Of a stretch of DNA of 64,000 nt, positions 12,656 through 37,079 are shown piece after piece. The notes beneath the pieces are model-generated. The model saw only the letters and a program-made list of their open reading frames with translations. It ran no database searches and was not told the DNA's origin. A program made the position numbers and the translations under genes. The stretch lies in the sequence record NC_042136.1; one strand, given 5' to 3'. Every line of letters starts with the position of its first letter. Position 1 is the first letter of the stretch.

Positions 12656-12673
12656 ATAATCAAAAAAGCAAAA

Positions 12674-12707
12674 ATAACTCCTACCTCCCAAGGGAGGTAG
12701 GAGTTAT
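12674..12707. terminator. Bidirectional terminator-like palindrome
   Basis: ATAACTCCTACCTCCC-AA-GGGAGGTAGGAGTTAT between convergent transcription units. Confidence 0.7.
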
Positions 12708-12985
12708 AAGTACGCCAAATCCTTCATCATGGTTAACGCCAACCAACCATAACAAAGTTTCTCAACAAAGAGGAGTTATCATGTGCTTTCACAAACCCAA
12801 ACTTATGTCAACACATAGTATTACCCTACGGTTAAAAATCACAACCTAGGTATTTAAGTTTTTCGTAGACTTCTTCGACATCTTTAGAAATAATAACGGC
12901 GGTATCACAGAAGTCATGCATCGCACGGAAATACCAATCGGAACAATCTTGGAAAATTTCTTCATAATTAATTCCTTAAAAGCAT

Positions 12986-23021: not shown

Positions 23022-24170
23022 ATGTCCAACGTCTACGTTCCTAGACTACCAGTTAGTGATGTTAGAGAAGTAAACCAAACTTTTAATTATTTAAAGTCCC
23101 ATTTCAAAACAACAGGATTGATTAGTGAAGTATGCGCTCACCTCAACATCACACCTCATCAACTACGTTACCTGTTTGCTAAAGATGGACTAGAAACCCC
23201 TAAATACTATTTAGCGAAGTTACGTAGTGAATACGCCATGCATGAAGTCACTACGACCGAACGTCCTATTAGCGAGATTATGTCCGATCTCCTTTACGAG
23301 AACGTCCACCGTTTTACAAACTGGTACGTGTTTCACGCTAAACTATCTCCTATTAAGCATCGCATCGCAGTCAAAATGCAAGAACAAGGTAAACAACCAT
23401 CGATGGATACTCCGACTGATGTAGCTAAACGTTTGAAAAACAAAATCGACACAGAGTTTACCGACATCATAGAAATCAAGTCTATCATGGAAGACACCGT
23501 GTTTGCTGATGTCAGTGTACGTCGAGCATTTAAGCGCTTAACTAACCATGCTCCGAAAGAGTACTTGATCAAAGTCCAATGTGATTACGTAGCAAGACGT
23601 ATTAAGAAAGATGGTTGGATAAAACAATCCATTTTGAAACACGTCAAGCAAAGTCGTATTACCGGGTTCAACAACATGTTCAAGAAACATTACGGGATGA
23701 CCACATTTGAATACGGACGAGTGCATAGTTTTGGTTATACTGCGATGGTGTGTGGTGTACAACGCTGGGTAAACCAACACTTAATGGATGAGATCTTAGA
23801 ACACTTAGCCGAAGAAGTCTTCACGGACCATCAACCTATAAGAGACATCCAGAAGTTCTACGGGATCCACTACGGTAACTGGTCTAAGATGTTTGAACAA
23901 ACGGTAGGGATGAACGCTAAATGCACATACCGTGCTTTAGAGCTCGAAGGAGCACTATATCTAATCCAACACACCAGTTGGAACATCGAGCGTATCATCA
24001 GTGTCGCAACCAGTGGCAATAGAAGTTCTTTTTGTATGTCGTTCCGTTCTCACTTTGGTTTAACTCCGACGGAAGCCCGTCGTTATCCTGAACGTGTTAT
24101 GCGTTTAAAGGGAACAGAAGGATTAAGAAAATATATCGAGGTAGGTGTTAAGAACATCACACTAAGTTAA
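23022..24170 (+). CDS. AraC-family protein made of three tandem DNA-binding domains, 382 aa
   Basis: Three repeats of the AraC double-HTH pattern ending in LSPIKHR, FKKHYGMTTFEYG and FRSHFGLTPTEAR; no ligand-binding domain. Confidence 0.8.
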   Translation: MSNVYVPRLPVSDVREVNQTFNYLKSHFKTTGLISEVCAHLNITPHQLRYLFAKDGLETPKYYLAKLRSEYAMHEVTTTERPISEIMSDLLYENVHRFTNWYVFHAKLSPIKHRIAVKMQEQGKQPSMDTPTDVAKRLKNKIDTEFTDIIEIKSIMEDTVFADVSVRRAFKRLTNHAPKEYLIKVQCDYVARRIKKDGWIKQSILKHVKQSRITGFNNMFKKHYGMTTFEYGRVHSFGYTAMVCGVQRWVNQHLMDEILEHLAEEVFTDHQPIRDIQKFYGIHYGNWSKMFEQTVGMNAKCTYRALELEGALYLIQHTSWNIERIISVATSGNRSSFCMSFRSHFGLTPTEARRYPERVMRLKGTEGLRKYIEVGVKNITLS

Positions 24171-24181
24171 GGTAATAAACC

Positions 24182-24889
24182 ATGAAAGCAGAATTTAGAG
24201 ATAAGCTTTTTAAAGATACGTTAAAATGGATAGACAACAACTTTCATCGTTCCATTCGTGCTAAAGACATCGGTGATCAACTGGGTATGAGTATGAATAA
24301 CGTGACTGATCTGTTTCGCCGTCAACTGGATACCACGCCCGGAGAATATCTCCGGGTTGTTCGGATGAAACACGCCAAACAACTATTGATGAAAGGCGTT
24401 AGACCAACCTCAGTTTACAAACAAACCGGCTACAGTTCTTACCGCGCTTTCACTAGAGTCTATCAAATACACTTTGGTGTCCAACCTTCCCAAGACTACC
24501 ATTACTTCATGGGAGTGATAACGGAACCGATGGCAACACCACAAATGGACACACTTTATCCATTTGCCTTACGGAAACGTATCGTCGATTATGTCAAAGA
24601 CAACATTCAGTGTAATTACACGTTACGTGATCTAGAATCTCGTTTCAAGTTACCGGGGAGTTGTTTAGGAGAAATGTTCGTGCACTATTACGACCAGACC
24701 TATACGGACTGGCGTAAATCTTTACGCATGCGCATGGCTTCAGACTTAATCCGAGATAACCCGAAGATTGACGTAACACGTATCCATGGACAACTTGGCA
24801 TCTGTTCCTTCCAATACTTCGTAACTTTATTTAAACAACACTACCGTACGCATCCTCAATCGTACGCGAATGCATTCAAGAGAAAATGA
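24182..24889 (+). CDS. AraC-family protein with two DNA-binding domains, 235 aa
   Basis: LFRRQLDTTPGEYLRVVRMKHAKQLL...GYSSYRAFTRVYQIHFGVQP, plus a second repeat ending FKQHYRTHPQSY. Confidence 0.85.
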   Translation: MKAEFRDKLFKDTLKWIDNNFHRSIRAKDIGDQLGMSMNNVTDLFRRQLDTTPGEYLRVVRMKHAKQLLMKGVRPTSVYKQTGYSSYRAFTRVYQIHFGVQPSQDYHYFMGVITEPMATPQMDTLYPFALRKRIVDYVKDNIQCNYTLRDLESRFKLPGSCLGEMFVHYYDQTYTDWRKSLRMRMASDLIRDNPKIDVTRIHGQLGICSFQYFVTLFKQHYRTHPQSYANAFKRK

Positions 24890-25596
24890 ATATGACTGAC
24901 CACGAATTAGCACTACAAATCCAAGACTACGTTAAAGAAATCTATATGAAACCTCGTCCATCTAACTTGGTTTACACTAAGTTCAATATGAGTGGACCTG
25001 TCATGGGACGTTTCTTGGAACGATTAAATCATCCTTCAATCAAAGTAATGTTGGTGGAAGCCCGTATGGAGCGAGCGAAAGAACTCCTAGCACAAGACAT
25101 GGTTAATGTTCCGGGGATCCATACCCATGTAGGTTACTCTACTCGTAATAGTTTCGAGCGTCGTTTCAAAGATCACGTTGGTATGTCCCCAGCGGTCTAT
25201 CGCAAAAAGATCCAAGAACAACAAACCGAGCAAGAACACATGACTTACTCTAAACGAGTTAACGAGGTTACTCAAAACGAACTCCGTAAATACTTGATCA
25301 AACACTTCCGGGAACCAGAACTGACGTTGAACCGTGTGCAAGATGTTTTTAACCTCAGCAAGGATGAGATCCAAGAGATCATCGGCATCGTTTACAATTG
25401 CACGTTTGAAGAACGACTCTTAACTATGCGTTTAGAAGAAGTCGGTAACCTTTTAGTGAAAACCACACGAACACCACGACAACTCTCTACCGAGTGTGGG
25501 TTTGTGAGTTATCACTATTTCGTGGGTCAATTCACTAAACGTTTTACGGTAGGTCCTAAACACTATCGTCAACTAAAATTAATCAAGGCTATATAA
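24886..25596 (+). CDS. AraC-family protein with two DNA-binding domains, 236 aa
   Basis: RMERAKELL...VGYSTRNSFERRFKDHVGMSPAVYR and CGFVSYHYFVGQFTKRFTVGPKHYR; ATGA overlap with the previous gene. Confidence 0.85.
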   Translation: MNMTDHELALQIQDYVKEIYMKPRPSNLVYTKFNMSGPVMGRFLERLNHPSIKVMLVEARMERAKELLAQDMVNVPGIHTHVGYSTRNSFERRFKDHVGMSPAVYRKKIQEQQTEQEHMTYSKRVNEVTQNELRKYLIKHFREPELTLNRVQDVFNLSKDEIQEIIGIVYNCTFEERLLTMRLEEVGNLLVKTTRTPRQLSTECGFVSYHYFVGQFTKRFTVGPKHYRQLKLIKAI

Positions 25597-25605
25597 CTGG
25601 GGTGT
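25590..25605 (+). promoter_or_regulatory. Early promoter motif facing a non-coding region
   Basis: TATATAAC-tgg-GGTGT, overlapping the stop codon of the third AraC gene. Confidence 0.65.
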
Positions 25606-25790
25606 AATACTATGTGGGTAATGACTAGCTGACCATCTAAATGAAGAATTGAACAATCTTGGTGTATACCGCAATTGACGACATAATTTGGAATCTATCC
25701 TCGGCACCCACATCACCCTTTCACTAATTGGGTGTACAAAACGGGTATAAAGCGCAAGGCCGTCATTTTACGATGACGGCACTTATTATG
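25606..25790 (+). ncRNA. Putative structured small RNA 1
   Basis: Lies between an early promoter and the hairpin GCCGTCAT/ATGACGGC (25759-25780); no usable + ORF; stems ATGTGGGT/ACCCACAT and CACCC/GGGTG. Confidence 0.4.
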
Positions 25791-25859
25791 TTGGAAAGTA
25801 AGTACATGAATGTTTATTCCCTTGTTTTCATTTTTGTTGAGCCCTTACTTTCTGACGCC

Positions 25860-26089
25860 ATATATCGGCGGAAGGTTTCCTTCATTCCCTGTCGCCGGTA
25901 AGTTCACCTGACCGCATCGATAAAGGTGAATAGCTGTCTCTACAGCCGGCTGTGCTCTTTCCCAACATGGGTCCTCCAATTCCCCTGTTGGTCCTCCTTG
26001 TGAGAGCATAGTTCGGGTGTTCCGACACCGCCACTGCTTTCATGCAATGCTTTGCAAACCATCTCCTTGACGGGAGATGGTTCTTTTTT
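25860..26089 (+). ncRNA. Putative structured small RNA 2 (multi-branch, CCUCC-rich loops)
   Basis: GC-rich non-coding stretch with about 7 nested or adjacent helices, G-U pairs on the + strand, ending in an intrinsic terminator. Confidence 0.5.
26057..26089 (+). terminator. Intrinsic terminator
   Basis: AACCATCTCC-TTGACG-GGAGATGGTT followed by CTTTTTT. Confidence 0.8.
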
Positions 26090-26235
26090 GCTTTTATACT
26101 TATTTTAAACTTTACGGTAAACTTCCTGTAACGCTTTCTAAGCCTGTTTACCCCATCTTACCACCCAATGTAAAGGGTAACTGCGTGCGCCATCATTTAG
26201 GTGCGTTTCAAGCGGTTTAAACACGGAATTAACTT

Positions 26236-26529
26236 ATGAGTCAAAACAACTTATCTATCGTCGGGGTTTGTTTCTCAGATTATCAAGATCTGATAAACGA
26301 CACCCGTAATGACAATCTTGGGCTAGCGCTCATACAAGAAGCATTATTGGATCAAGGTTACCACGTCAACCATGTACAGTATGTCGAAGGTGACCCATCC
26401 ACATTAGCGGAAGTGCGTGCTTATGTTCGTGGAGCTATCTCTGATCAATCGAATGGAATACCTACTAATGTGAACGTCGGAATCAAACCGGCAAATCAAC
26501 ATTGTTATTCCGTATTGTTTTTTAAATAG
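26236..26529 (+). CDS. Hypothetical protein, 97 aa
   Basis: First ORF of a tightly packed operon of small genes. Confidence 0.65.
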   Translation: MSQNNLSIVGVCFSDYQDLINDTRNDNLGLALIQEALLDQGYHVNHVQYVEGDPSTLAEVRAYVRGAISDQSNGIPTNVNVGIKPANQHCYSVLFFK

Positions 26530-32887: not shown

Positions 32888-34996
32888 ATGGCGATCGGCG
32901 GTAAAGACGATTGGGAAAAAGTAATTGAAGAAAATGAACGTAATACTAGTGACGTTCCATCTCAAGAACCTATCCCAGAACAACCAATTGTAAAACAACC
33001 AACCACATCTCAAACTGCACAACAAGGAGCAGAAAAAATGTCTCAAGCAAATAAAACACAATCTCTACTAGACTTCGCATCAGTTCTTGGTATGAACTCT
33101 GTAATGTCTGGCGGTCGTTCAGTTCCTGTTGTGAACGAAGTAATGAAAGCTTTGAACGACTTTAAAGAAGAGAAAGGTAAATCTTCTCTAGCACCTGCAC
33201 TACAAGCCATCATCCCTCAAGAAGTTATTTCTATGGATGCTAACTTGTCTCCAGTGCTACCGGGCATCATCCTAGCGCGCCGTGTTGGTACTTCAATGAT
33301 CATCGCTCCTATCATGTTCTCTAACCGTGAACTAGCGATTCAACTTGAAGAGATCCACACTAACGGTCTAATGGGTCAAAACACTCCAAGCAAAGTTCAG
33401 ATCAAACAAGCACCTAACCGTTACATGGATAGCAACGTTATCCGTAACATCATGGACTCGATCAAACTTCGCTACGCTGCGGATGGTGTTAACGATGTTC
33501 AACTGATCACTTCTCGCGTAATCAACTTGGAAGATTACCAAACTCCAGAAAACAAAGAAGCAGGTCTACCTCAGTTGCTTACTGGTGTCATCCTAGATGA
33601 GTGGGAACGTGGTATGAAGATCACACTAACCAAAGCAATGGTTAAAGCGCAACACGATCTGAAAACTCCGTTCATTGACTCTAAAGGTCAAATCGATAAA
33701 AACGCTTACGGTCCAACTAAGTCTGCTACAGCGCGTATCGAATCAGTGAAAACTCAAAGCGGTGCACCTCTAACTATCGATGGTGTTCCATGTTCAGCGA
33801 ACATGACCGTTCAGCTTCAAACTGCGCCAAAAGAAGGTCAACACCTAAATTCAGATGCCGCTCGTGGTATCGTAACAGCTTACTCTACTGTACAGCTTAT
33901 CGGTGTACCTTTCGCAGTTTACACAGCGAACCTAATGTCTCGTCCACAACAAATGGCGTTCAACCCAATGATGAATGCTGGTGTTGACGCGTACCCTCAC
34001 GGTTACCACCCACTACAAGCAGTTGTTGTAATGAACACTGCACGTGCACAAGCACAAATGGGTAACAACTCTGGTATCGCTTCATTCCTAATGGGTCTGT
34101 ACGCGAACATGACGGTTAACCACAACCACTTGTTCACTGAGCCACTACGTCTAATGTCTAACGGTGCTCGCGGTAACTTGTCTCACATTGAACGTCGTAT
34201 CGATGACATGATCATGGGTGCACTTCCAAAACGTGATGACAAAACTAAGATCACTGAAGCTCGTCTAAAAGACATGGACTTCACTTCAAGCTGGATCCGT
34301 CGTAACATTGCACCACATGCATCTTACGCGATCGACCTAGCAGAGTTCGGTAACGAAGCAGCCCTAGGCAACTTCCTACTTAACCTAGCAGGTAAAACCA
34401 ACAATGCTTCTGAGAACAAGATGACAGTAGTTCGTGTTCTTGATGCCATCACAGATGGTGAAGCAACTCGTCGCATCAACGAAAACCGTCAAGCTGGTAA
34501 AGGTTGGACTATGGACAAAGATATCCTTTGTGCATCTTCTATCATCCTACCAGTAGGTACATTCAAACACAACGGCCAACTACACTCGTTGGAAGAAGTG
34601 GATGAAATGTTCCTAAGCCGTCTGTGCCCAACTGATTCAACTCCAATGATTCAGTACCTAGGCGCTATCTACGGTGACAACGGTCAAACTCCAGAAGCAG
34701 TGCGTCGTTACAAAATGACTACTATGCTTCCTACTTTGATCAACGATGATGTGAACATCACTGGTACAGCTCGTCGTCACTACGTGTCTCCTGAGTTCGC
34801 TGAGTTCCTAGGTCTATGTCTAGACAAACTAGGTAACTTGAACGCTTCTGGTACTATGGGTACGTTCGCTTCTAACGTTGCGATCTACGCTCCATCAGTT
34901 GAGTTCGCAGTAATGGCAGCAGCAGGTGCTTCTGGTGCTTACATGGCTACTAACGGCGGCTTGATGGGTAACGCTTCTGGTGTTACTTACGCTTAA
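32888..34996 (+). CDS. chmA: Chimallin (major phage nuclear shell protein)
   Basis: Directly upstream of nvRNAP beta'; blocks ASYAIDLAEFGNEAAL, IILPVGTF and VNITGTARRHYVSPEF align by eye with recalled 201phi2-1 gp105 segments; disordered N-tail, Gly/Ala-rich C-tail; highly expressed codon usage. Confidence 0.85.
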   Translation: MAIGGKDDWEKVIEENERNTSDVPSQEPIPEQPIVKQPTTSQTAQQGAEKMSQANKTQSLLDFASVLGMNSVMSGGRSVPVVNEVMKALNDFKEEKGKSSLAPALQAIIPQEVISMDANLSPVLPGIILARRVGTSMIIAPIMFSNRELAIQLEEIHTNGLMGQNTPSKVQIKQAPNRYMDSNVIRNIMDSIKLRYAADGVNDVQLITSRVINLEDYQTPENKEAGLPQLLTGVILDEWERGMKITLTKAMVKAQHDLKTPFIDSKGQIDKNAYGPTKSATARIESVKTQSGAPLTIDGVPCSANMTVQLQTAPKEGQHLNSDAARGIVTAYSTVQLIGVPFAVYTANLMSRPQQMAFNPMMNAGVDAYPHGYHPLQAVVVMNTARAQAQMGNNSGIASFLMGLYANMTVNHNHLFTEPLRLMSNGARGNLSHIERRIDDMIMGALPKRDDKTKITEARLKDMDFTSSWIRRNIAPHASYAIDLAEFGNEAALGNFLLNLAGKTNNASENKMTVVRVLDAITDGEATRRINENRQAGKGWTMDKDILCASSIILPVGTFKHNGQLHSLEEVDEMFLSRLCPTDSTPMIQYLGAIYGDNGQTPEAVRRYKMTTMLPTLINDDVNITGTARRHYVSPEFAEFLGLCLDKLGNLNASGTMGTFASNVAIYAPSVEFAVMAAAGASGAYMATNGGLMGNASGVTYA

Positions 34997-35088: not shown

Positions 35089-37079
35089 GTGATGTCACAC
35101 GTTACCGACGATATTGCAGTAAACGTATTAGCTGGAGAATCATTTGAAGATCTATTGCCTATTAAGCAATTTGAACGATACCAACAACAACTTGGCTATC
35201 GCATAACTGATGACCAGTCTTACTATGCTCCTCTTTATCCTGCGTTTCGTAATTACGATTTCGCGCATGATACGTCTAAGTCTCAACCTATTTACTTGAA
35301 CGACTTTGATTTCTGTTTAGAAGAAGACCGAGAGCGATTAGAAAAACTAATACGTGTGGACTTTGATACGGATACTTTTGAAACGACCGCATCGTGTGGT
35401 TGTGAAAAACCGTTGAAGGGCAACCACCTAATTGGTTCTGGTCGTGTGTGTAAGAACTGTGGTAACCAAGTAGAACGTTTGGTCGACACCGAACTAACTA
35501 CAAAAGTCTGGCTACGCTTACCCACCGGTGTTCATTCTTTCATTAACCCGGCGTTCTATCGCACATTCTTGCAAAAGATAGCGACAGCGTCACCTAAGAT
35601 AGAAATCATTACGTACATCATTGATCCTTCTTATCGTCGTAAAATAAACTCACAAAGCTCAGAGAAACTCCGAGAGCTCCAAAGTCATCTACGTTTGTTA
35701 TTAAACAAATTAGACTTGAATGAATTCGTTGTACACGCGGATACCATCATGGAGCATTTCTTATTAGGGGAAGGTCGTAAGATCACCGCTCTTAAGAACT
35801 CGGATGCCAAAGAGATCATGTGTGGGTTCATTGACTTTAAAGATGAAGTGTTCACCAAGTATCTACCAGTTCCTAATAAGCTCTCCACGGTTATTGAGAA
35901 ATCAGGTAAAGAACGTTATGCGTCTTCTAGTCAGCTTAAAATGGATTCAACGTATATGTCCATTGCTGATACGAAAGACACTACCGATCTTTATACGGTG
36001 AATGAGTTTGATATCAGTGCTAGCATTGATCGTGTTGGTAAAGGTATCGTCGCCTTATCTCAACAAAACGCTGCACAAATGAAAGACTTCTTATTCCCTA
36101 AACCGGGAGCAGCACGTAAGCTGGTAGCCTCTGGTTCATTGCCACTGACAGGACGTTCAGTTATTACGTCTAAAACCGGTATCCATAACCCGGGAATGAT
36201 TGAAGTTCCTTGGATTATGGCACTGGCTCAATTAGAGAAACACATTTTATCTCATTTATATCGTAAGGGATACAGTCCGACGGCAGCCTTAGAAAAGATT
36301 TCTAAAGCAGCTCATTATTTGGATCCTGACATCGATGCGTTCTTTGCTTATCATGAAGAACGAAATGACATTGTGTGTAAATCTGGTCGTATGCCATCCA
36401 TCCAGTATCTCTCTCGCCGGACGTTCTTCGCCCGCATTAAACGAGATCTGGGAGACCAATCTATAGGACTTCCAATACTGTCAGTAGGTCCTTTTAATGC
36501 TGACTTCGACGGTGAATATTTGCCGTCTTTAAACTTCTTTAATTGCTGGAACTCCGTAAAGCTCTATTTACTACAATAGTTGAGTGATCGACTATGAATG
36601 TGGACGAAAGTCAGAAATAAAAATAGAGATGTCCTATGCTTAATATCCTTATCTGGGATTAGATGAGGTGCTAAGGGATGTGTAATCGGAAATCAGCAGC
36701 GAAGACTCTCACGTAGAGTAACGTTCAACGACTAGGTGGGGAGAAGTCTCCTCGAACAGGAAGAGTGGAATCAAGGAATGATGAAGCTAAGATATAGTCT
36801 CGCCCGGTGTGAAAGTATCGGAAGTCACCATTTGGGAGGTGACTGGCGGATTAACGACCCGCTTTAAAAAGCACTAGCAATAGTGTAACAATGTGTGCGG
36901 ACCAGATGGTCCTATTCTTCCTGCCTGATCTAAGATCTAAGGCAGTTAGTTATGGGGCATTCGGTCACCAGTCAGTATTTGATGAAAATAAACCATTCAC
37001 CATTAGTCGACACTATAAACAACCGTCGACCAACTTGATGAATATCAACAACGTAATGCGTAAACTGGAGTTCAAGTAA
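35089..37079 (+). CDS. Non-virion RNAP beta' N-terminal subunit (phiKZ gp55-56.1-like), spliced: exon 1 35089-36513, exon 2 36900-37079, 534 aa
   Basis: Zn-finger CGC...CKNCG, TGRSVI and RMPS motifs; splicing restores the catalytic FNADFDG|DQM motif in frame. Confidence 0.9.
36514..36899 (+). mobile_element. Group I self-splicing intron without an ORF, 386 nt
   Basis: P1 GACGGT/GCCGTC with U-G at the 5' splice site; P AATTGCTGGAA (36541), Q AATCAGCAGC (36691), R GTTCAACGACTA (36723), S AAGATATAGTCT (36789); terminal G at 36899. Confidence 0.92.

Follow-up and report, generated by a model that had tools for sequence, protein, structure and literature searches.

The 64,000-nucleotide (nt) stretch of DNA analysed here (the window) comes from the 236-kb genome of Vibrio phage VP4B (NC_042136), a Tidunavirus of the Gorgonvirinae, which form a clade of nucleus-forming chimalliviruses (PMC10587174); position 25600 of the window is position 87600 of the record. 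Between the third of three AraC-like genes and an open reading frame (ORF) of 97 amino acids (aa) lies a 640-nt gap without an annotated gene, and an earlier note had flagged part of it (25860-26089; GC content 0.51, against 0.43 window-wide) as a structured jumbo-phage RNA of about 230 nt. Our analysis indicates, with a probability of roughly 0.9, that the gap holds a plus-strand gene for a highly structured, independent non-coding RNA (ncRNA) of about 478 nt, from 25614 to about 26089. Covariation, an excess of G-U pairs and synteny bear out a real RNA that is read from the plus strand and ends at the terminator; the size and boundaries first given do not hold, since the flagged stretch is only the 3' half and the structured element begins about 250 nt further 5', at 25611. 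The locus is arranged as follows.

23022-25596, plus strand: three AraC/HTH_18 paralogues in tandem (382, 235 and 236 aa), always directly 5' of the RNA
24886-25596, plus strand: AraC3, the last of the three and the 5' neighbour of the RNA
25611-25614, plus strand: TATG, putative late-type promoter of the phage non-virion RNA polymerase, with G25614 as +1; invariant in eight homologues; context GTAATACTATGTG
26057-26089, plus strand: intrinsic terminator AACCAUCUCC/GGAGAUGGUU followed by C-U6, the predicted 3' end of the RNA; six variants, all paired; YUUUUUUGC invariant
26236-26529, plus strand: the 97-aa ORF, unannotated in the VP4B record and the 3' neighbour of the RNA; 38-60% identity across all Gorgonvirinae genomes, with no Pfam domain found

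Homologues of the element are found at this locus in each of the nine Gorgonvirinae genomes (VP4B, pTD1, phiKT1028 or Ariel, phiKT1019 or Eric, Aphrodite1, USC-1, 5 TSL-2019, 2 TSL-2019 and PDCC-1). The pTD1 region was found by blastn and those of the other relatives by synteny through the 97-aa gene, and the relatives' versions of the RNA are 430-574 nt long. The conserved element is limited by the invariant TATG and by the terminator with its U-run, about 478 nt from the G of TATG. TATGT is invariant in all homologues, 15-25 nt 3' of the AraC3 stop codon, and the anchors common to all of them are AGCCGGCUG, CAGUUCGGRU, CACUGC, and the terminator followed by YUUUUUUGC. The RNA evolves more slowly than the flanking proteins, as seen from its invariant 9-mers and anchors compared with AraC3, whose homologues are confined to the same nine phages and share only 25-31% identity between genera. 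The flagged stretch had been described as ORF-free; ORFs of up to 57 aa are in fact present, none conserved in position, and the longest ORFs in the homologues (33-70 aa) vary in strand and position, with no conserved frame.

The whole-length cross-genus MAFFT alignment was structurally unreliable in the middle region, and eleven helices were therefore tabulated phage by phage: S1, H3, M1, Hx, Ha, Hb, Hc, P2, the rod (P4a, P4b, P4c) and the terminator. The architecture of the middle third depends on the genus: P1 and P2 make it up in Tidunavirus, whereas Aphroditevirus has Hx, Ha, Hb and Hc. Most of the tabulated helices occur in three to six sequence variants with complementarity always kept. 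In the covariation check that the earlier note had proposed across related jumbo phages, at least eleven helices keep their pairing through compensatory changes. The parts of the VP4B RNA are listed below from 5' to 3', including two loops that resemble the anti-Shine-Dalgarno (anti-SD) sequence.

25612-25713, plus strand: 5' domain closed by helix S1 (25612-25619 with 25706-25713); S1 has five sequence variants with perfect pairing
25661-25672, plus strand: invariant hairpin motif GGUGUAUACCGC inside the 5' domain
25714-25734, plus strand: hairpin H2 (CACCC/GGGUG) of the minimum free energy (MFE) fold; analogous hairpins in pTD1 and phiKT1028, none in Aphrodite1 and USC-1
25745-25756, plus strand: single-stranded block GUAUAAAGCGCA, conserved in six of eight homologues
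25759-25780, plus strand: hairpin H3 (GCCGUCA/UGACGGC), terminator-like, without a U-run; four variants, all paired
25787-25790, plus strand: second TATG, a possible internal start of a nested RNA of about 300 nt; kept only in VP4B and pTD1
25790-25856, plus strand: domain of helix M1 (25793-25802 with 25844-25853, extendable to 25790-25856); six variants over seven homologues, all paired
25863-25900, plus strand: hairpin P1 (UAUCGGCGG/UCGCCGGUA), spanning the GAAGG/CCTTC region; from the MFE fold alone, no clear covariation, poorly conserved in Tidunaviruses
25902-25931, plus strand: hairpin P2 (GUUCACCU/AGGUGAAU); in pTD1 an A-U pair has become G-C by compensatory change, and in phiKT1028 the arms read UUCAU/AUGAA
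25907-25915, plus strand: 9-mer CCUGACCGC in the 5' arm and loop of P2, collinear with the same 9-mer in Aphroditevirus RNAs
25933-25946, plus strand: hairpin P3 (GCUGU CUCU ACAGC); alternatively its 3' arm pairs with 26018-26020 and lengthens the rod, with one compensatory change for each reading
25946-26016, plus strand: the rod, with invariant CCGG (25946-25949) paired to UCGG (26013-26016) at its base
25950-25958 with 26003-26011, plus strand: CUGUGCUCU paired to AGAGCAUAG within the rod
25962-25967 with 25986-25991, plus strand: apical hairpin of the rod (CCAACA/UGUUGG), its stem covarying within the genus
25972-25981, plus strand: apical loop UCCUCCAAUU, anti-SD-like; unpaired probability 0.96
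25991-26001, plus strand: internal-loop motif GUCCUCCUUGU, which includes CCUCCUU; unpaired probability 0.95
26017-26029, plus strand: P5 hairpin region (GUGU UCCG ACAC), its sequence kept only in pTD1 and replaced by a different hairpin in the other homologues
26032-26039, plus strand: single-stranded block CACUGCUU 5' of the terminator; CACUGC in all eight homologues, CACUGCGU in pTD1

Helix S1 and the base of the rod were compared with shuffled and slid controls. For S1, 97% of the cells of a model-fitted alignment pair and six of ten pairs have changed on both sides, compared with 33-45% pairing in slid controls, and S1 lies above all 500 shuffles and all slid registers. Its two arms read as follows in five of the phages.

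VP4B: 5' arm AUGUGGGU, 3' arm ACCCACAU
pTD1: 5' arm UGUGGUGAGA, 3' arm UCUCACCACA
phiKT1028: 5' arm UGUGAACAGAA, 3' arm UUCUGUUCACA
phiKT1019: 5' arm UGUAAGCGA, 3' arm UCGCUUACA
Aphrodite1: 5' arm UGUGAGCGGU, 3' arm ACCGCUCACA

In every phage the bases that follow TATG pair about 100 nt downstream, which places the whole element from 25611 to about 26089. The base of the rod pairs in 100% of the cells over the eight homologues; four of its pairs have changed on both sides, a G-U pair is invariant, and the rod, too, lies above all 500 shuffles and all slid controls. CCGG pairs there with UCGG, and CUG... with ...CAG across a bulged U; the two invariant blocks are explained by their pairing with each other. 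A long-range pairing of AAAGCG in GUAUAAAGCGCA with UGCUUU (26035-26040) may form according to the MFE fold, with little comparative support.

Several helices had already been proposed in the flagged stretch. Compensatory changes in relatives confirm TTCACCT/AGGTGAA (P2), TGTGCTCT/AGAGCATA (P4b) and CCAACA/TGTTGG (P4c), and the proposed terminator with its T-run is found as a hairpin at 26057-26082 followed by T6, paired in all six of its variants. CTGT/ACAG and GGTGT/ACACC are ambiguous, as they can exchange partners to extend the rod, with one compensatory change for either arrangement; so is GAAGG/CCTTC, for which a longer local hairpin is an alternative. Two pairings fail: GGCGG/CCGCC meets an uncompensated CCACC as its 3' arm in pTD1, and GCCGG/CCGGC clashes with the CCGG/UCGG pairing that is invariant in all eight homologues.

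Two further sequence motifs recur in the RNAs. The palindrome CAUCGAUG is invariant inside M1 of the Aphroditevirus-group RNAs, and the P2 loop of VP4B (25915-25921) reads CAUCGAU; the palindrome may provide an intermolecular (dimerisation) contact. Among 5-mers, ACCGC shows the strongest enrichment in the RNAs (15 occurrences against 2.3 expected; for example at 25668, 25911 and 26027), with three or four sites in VP4B, phiKT1019, Aphrodite1 and 2 TSL-2019 and one each in pTD1 and phiKT1028.

The excess of G-U pairs, the U-run of the terminator and the TATG all place the RNA on the plus strand, the orientation preferred from the outset on the grounds of G-U pairs and terminator. The tabulated helices without the invariant Hb comprise 499 Watson-Crick, 32 G-U and 1 A-C pairs, a count that is somewhat biased by the choice of some helices by eye on the plus strand; the comparison is further weakened by the homologue set, which consists of eight distinct sequences, five of them closely related. 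Compared with shuffles, the full-length VP4B RNA folds with z -4.7 on the plus strand and z -2.4 on the minus strand, and the flagged stretch with z -4.7 and z -3.3, respectively. Taken as a generic structured ncRNA, the element has helices held by compensatory substitutions, with 9 to 10 double-sided pair changes in each domain tested (above all 500 shuffles and all slid registers), and no conserved ORF.

The earlier note had recognised no RNA family in the sequence, and a search of the whole window against Rfam 15 at the gathering threshold agreed, returning only a group I intron elsewhere (36461-36821, plus strand; RF00028, 54.9 bits, the match spanning the full model). At E<=10, the region 25550-26300 gave weak, terminator-dominated chance matches (best 25 bits, against a threshold of 49). 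A group I or II intron, an HDV-like ribozyme, a cobalamin riboswitch (GCCACUG), a CRISPR-repeat mimic and a T-loop were considered and set aside, as none had a model match and their defining features were absent, and ARAGORN found no transfer RNA or transfer-messenger RNA. GOLLD and ROOL are phage-associated RNAs of hundreds of nt, with many covarying helices and an unresolved function; the VP4B RNA differs from them in its smaller size, its occurrence in one subfamily of nine genomes and the lack of a covariance-model match.

The start of the RNA is assigned by its promoter context. Late promoters of the phiKZ non-virion polymerase carry TATG, with the G as +1 (PMC4666361), and we infer from the sequence that transcription of the VP4B RNA starts at the G of the invariant TATG, from a phiKZ-type late promoter; helix S1 begins at this G, as would suit a late transcription unit. 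The context GTAATACTATGTG recurs twice in VP4B, near-exactly at 12826-12814 on the minus strand and as GTAACATTCTATGTG at 164307-164321 of the VP4B record, about 80 nt 5' of the major head gene, where it is a candidate late-promoter consensus. GTAAYA..CTATGTG is the context common to the RNA promoter, the site upstream of the major head gene and the minus-strand copy, which precedes a second ncRNA candidate. At the other end, the conserved intrinsic terminator probably stops transcription. The features of the second candidate are these.

12662-12826, minus strand: second ncRNA candidate, 153 nt, ORF-free, between the terminase gene and gp054
12826-12814, minus strand: its promoter context GGGTAATACTATG, with G+1 at 12814
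12780-12771, minus strand: invariant single-stranded GAUAACUCCU, which exposes CUCCU

This second RNA (12662-12814) folds with z -6.2, has a strong terminator (12707-12675) followed by a U-run and is conserved in pTD1, phiKT1028 and phiKT1019. With the same promoter context and an exposed CUCCU, it supports the promoter assignment and points to CUCCU-exposing RNAs as a recurring device. GAUAACUCCU repeats the 5' arm of the RNA's own terminator and may serve as a seed or as a structural switch. The terminator sequence itself, AUAACUCCUACCUCCC...GGGAGGUAGGAGUUAU (12675-12707), is repeated at four to five places in each related Gorgonvirinae genome, and similar copies were found by blastn in some Aeromonas jumbo phages.

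The independence of the main RNA follows from the history of the gene beside it. In the Aphroditevirus group, the RNA block lies between AraC3 and the tubulin gene phuZ, whereas phuZ was not found by tblastn in the three Tidunaviruses VP4B, pTD1 and phiKT1028; its loss in pTD1 and Ariel has already been published (PMC11724907, PMC10587174). The Tidunaviruses nevertheless kept the RNA, and its helices differ by compensatory changes between VP4B, pTD1 and phiKT1028. Such a clean loss of phuZ, with the RNA and its covarying structure retained, implies that the RNA is an independent gene. The scar of the loss can be read in VP4B.

26083-26235: phuZ-loss scar; its first part, the spacer 26083-26113, corresponds to that of Aphroditevirus as far as the phuZ ribosome-binding site
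Remainder of the scar: about 55 nt of Tidunavirus-specific filler, then a block at about 26170-26235 (...GTAAAGGGTAACTGCG...CATCATTTAGGTGCG...) kept 5' of the 97-aa gene in both genera

Searches beyond these genomes returned the same phages. In IMG/VR, exact-word scans for two conserved cores recovered only VP4B and pTD1, plus one high-GC coding chance match. The three-anchor pattern AGCCGGCT..AGTTCGGRT..CACTGC gave 32 matches in JGI metagenomes, all of high GC and one with a T-run (none of those searched fits model R1 of the 5' domain), 21 in GTDB genomes (no Vibrio among them, and the 5' domain always lacking), and in IMG/VR the known isolates and one chance match. Protein-anchored locus searches added no others. 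Model R1 matches only the eight homologues, and not the phuZ neighbourhoods of the chimalliviruses next in relatedness, Klebsiella phage Miami, Aeromonas phage PS1 and Shewanella phage FishSpeaker. No description of an RNA at this locus was found in the searchable literature. The RNA is therefore best filed as a new family of phage structured ncRNA, specific to the Gorgonvirinae nucleus-forming jumbo phages and uncatalogued in Rfam. As for its neighbours, AraC-type activators would have no ready role if VP4B, like phiKZ, bypasses the host RNA polymerase.

The functional reading starts from the pair of C-rich loops in the rod. GGTCCTCC occurs twice, at 25970-25977 and 25990-25997 (CCTCC at 25973 and 25993), with both copies predicted to be about 95% unpaired; the second reads CCTCCTT, as the earlier note had observed, and CCUCCUU is the core of the 16S rRNA 3' tail. 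The apical loop is UCCUCCAAUA in pTD1 and UUCCUCCAG in phiKT1028, on stems that differ between the phages (CCAACA/UGUUGG plus GGG/CCC in VP4B, CUAAUAGG/CCUAUUAG in pTD1, AAGG/CCUU in phiKT1028), so that UCCUCCA is kept in the three Tidunaviruses on covarying stems. The internal-loop motif GUCCUCCUUGU is degenerate in pTD1 (UUCUCCUUAG) and in phiKT1028, and the identical 11-mer is present in Aphrodite1 and USC-1 at a non-collinear position; it is the longest exact string common to the VP4B and Aphrodite1 RNAs and the sole non-collinear one of at least 9 nt.

CCTCC/GGAGG is depleted in the window (38 occurrences against 69 expected), and CCTCC occurs on the plus strand at 0.2-0.4 per kb; the VP4B RNA has two CCUCC within 25 nt where 0.1 would be expected (P ~0.005). 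At least one CCUCC is found in six of seven homologues, at three independent locations. The rod apex of the other genus lacks the motif, and an unpaired CCUCC lies there inside M1 (Aphrodite1, USC-1) or in an insertion (2 TSL-2019, PDCC-1). An unpaired CCUCC or CUCCUU is thus present in all eight homologues, at differing positions, a pattern that suggests selection for the motif itself.

By analogy, we tentatively favour, at somewhat less than even odds, a late, stable, trans-acting RNA whose loops are directed against Shine-Dalgarno (SD) regions. Transcription would start at TATG, the first transcribed bases at once forming the closing helix of the 100-nt 5' domain, and the covarying scaffold would hold single-stranded C-rich motifs (UCCUCCA and GUCCUCCUUGU) that copy the anti-SD core. 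The RNA would accumulate late and act in trans, its loops pairing with GGAGG-type ribosome-binding sites of mRNAs and lowering or re-ranking their translation; GUCCUCCUUGU and CACUGCUUU would be the candidate pairing stretches toward host Vibrio transcript leaders. The invariant CCGG/UCGG rod base, the CACUGCUU block and the terminator may be protein-binding or stability modules.

The analogue we have in mind is RNAIII of S. aureus, a trans-acting RNA of about 500 nt with many hairpins, C-rich loops that pair with Shine-Dalgarno regions and an intrinsic terminator. The VP4B RNA resembles RNAIII, and with it RsaE and RoxS, as a multi-hairpin RNA of about 500 nt with C-rich loops and an intrinsic terminator; its C-rich motif is both exposed and conserved, as expected of anti-SD riboregulators of the RNAIII/RsaE/cuckoo type. 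It differs from RNAIII and RsaE in showing no sequence or covariance-model similarity and in having no hld-like peptide gene, and from RNAIII in being phage-encoded, in a Gram-negative host, behind a promoter of the phage-polymerase type.

The anti-SD idea, first put forward in the earlier note, has gained circumstantial support from the conserved UCCUCCA loop, the recurring unpaired CCUCC and the shared GUCCUCCUUGU. Several points weigh against it. The CCUCC motif is short and sits at different places in the two genera; it is missing from phiKT1019, where there are only CUCCUU (at the M1 site) and GCUCCA; and the background samples behind the joint chance probability of about 0.002 were small. 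No extended complement of the CCUCC loops was found beyond chance in the whole 236-kb VP4B genome. An RNA made in the phage nucleus would also need to reach the cytoplasm to affect translation, and a 480-nt scaffold with an invariant helical sequence exceeds the needs of a simple seed-bearing small RNA (sRNA), a hint of protein binding or of some other activity. As a weak target lead, the ribosome-binding site of gp032 (ACACGGAGGAC, VP4B record 34530-34540) is a 10/11 complement of GUCCUCCUUGU, within chance expectation.

The foremost rival, which we consider appreciably less probable, takes up that hint and regards the RNA as a protein-binding scaffold or decoy, a ribonucleoprotein that titrates a host or phage protein. 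Binding would be through the CCGG/UCGG core with its bulged U and a G-G mismatch, through the ACCGC repeats or through a hairpin-CCUCCUU mimic of the 16S tail, with bS21, Hfq, ProQ or an RNase as candidate partners. The helix CCGGCUG/CAGUUCGG is invariant in sequence rather than covarying in all eight homologues, the size and multi-domain fold are like those of large ncRNAs, and the search of the phage genome for RNA targets was empty, all of which would be consistent with such a role. The ACCGC enrichment (15 against 2.3 expected) points the same way, although pTD1 and phiKT1028 have just one site each. There is also a precedent in OLE RNA, a conserved RNA of about 600 nt whose CCUCCU, identical to the anti-SD core of 16S rRNA, is bound by bS21 (PMC12054373). 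OLE and the VP4B RNA are alike as large, complex, conserved ncRNAs with this motif; OLE is chromosomal in Bacillota, no Rfam match to it was found here, and its mimic is paired with an SD-like strand in P6, whereas the CCUCC motifs of VP4B are single-stranded.

A second alternative, which we regard as unlikely, divides the element into two RNAs, one of about 170 nt (25614-25781, ending at H3) and one of about 300 nt (25790-26089, from the second TATG). H3 is terminator-like, the second TATG lies in a 12-nt block (CACTTATTATGT) that is identical in VP4B and pTD1 between diverging flanks, and M1 begins at the G of this TATG just as S1 does at the first. The other six homologues lack the second TATG, however, H3 has no U-run, and Aphrodite1 and USC-1 have neither H2 nor H3.

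A further reading is more speculative and rather improbable. A late, abundant RNA would display on its scaffold a mimic of the 3' tail of 16S rRNA, made up of a hairpin with CCUCCUU after it and of the UCCUCCA loops; the mimic would soak up strong SD leaders or bS21 and so re-rank cytoplasmic translation toward phage mRNAs exported from the phage nucleus. The RNA would then be one of a small set of its kind, which includes 12662-12814.

It is less likely still that the element is a cis-acting leader, a long 5' untranslated region (5' UTR) or an attenuator for the gene that follows it (in Aphroditevirus, phuZ); the terminator would then determine read-through, and any free RNA would be a by-product of premature termination. 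The terminator lies about 38 nt before the phuZ start in the five phuZ-encoding relatives, with no obvious promoter between, and the CUCCUU loop could pair with the AAGGAG ribosome-binding site of phuZ. Premature termination is known to yield 5'-UTR-derived sRNAs in the giant phage 201phi2-1, and the sRNAs of phiKZ and 201phi2-1, shorter than 250 nt, are 5'-UTR-derived or intergenic, for example upstream of the tail gene gp182/gp277 (PMC11512511). These are likewise ncRNAs of nucleus-forming jumbo phages that run from a phage promoter to a terminator just 5' of a gene; they differ in being shorter and at other loci, with no reported anti-SD loops. A pure phuZ leader is unlikely because the Tidunaviruses, having deleted phuZ, keep the RNA and compensate its changes. 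Furthermore, in both genera a conserved block of its own lies upstream of the next gene, and the alternative pairing considered as an antiterminator is not conserved.

A DNA element (an origin, a PhuZ partition site or an operator for the AraC-like proteins) or a small protein gene is very improbable. The position between regulator genes and a tubulin-type segregation gene and the ORFs of up to 57 aa would suit such readings, but the compensatory changes join arms about 100 nt apart and tolerate G-U, the element is kept without phuZ, neither iterons nor a skew switch were found, and the ORFs change position and frame between homologues. We reject, as the least credible of all, the minus-strand RNA of the earlier note, with GGA/GGAGG loops sequestering CsrA in the manner of the CsrB/RsmZ sponges: GGAGGA does occur twice on that strand, the flagged stretch folds there with z -3.3, and the proposed promoter TTTACC (26121-26116)-N17-TATAAA (26098-26093) is present as a 9/12 sigma-70-like match (26121-26093), but this fails the -10 rule of the promoter scan, which reports no site, there are just two GGAGGA and no Rfam match to the CsrB family, the full-length fold is weaker (z -2.4 against -4.7), the 32 G-U against 1 A-C pairs favour the plus strand, the invariant G-U of the rod would become an A-C mismatch, and the U-run terminator and TATG conserved in all homologues are plus-strand signals.

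Almost nothing is known of the ncRNAs of nucleus-forming jumbo phages, and a recent review notes merely that phiKZ expresses some (PMC13282480). The RNA described here would be a structured family missing from the catalogues, unusually large and well supported, and it occurs in phages under development for aquaculture therapy. Its retention and ongoing compensation after the loss of the tubulin gene, together with its slower evolution than the flanking proteins, argue for a function of its own, and antisense-oligomer and cappable-seq methods are already in use on phiKZ-like phages. If the anti-SD loops do act on translation, they would represent a phage strategy of RNA control over host ribosomes.

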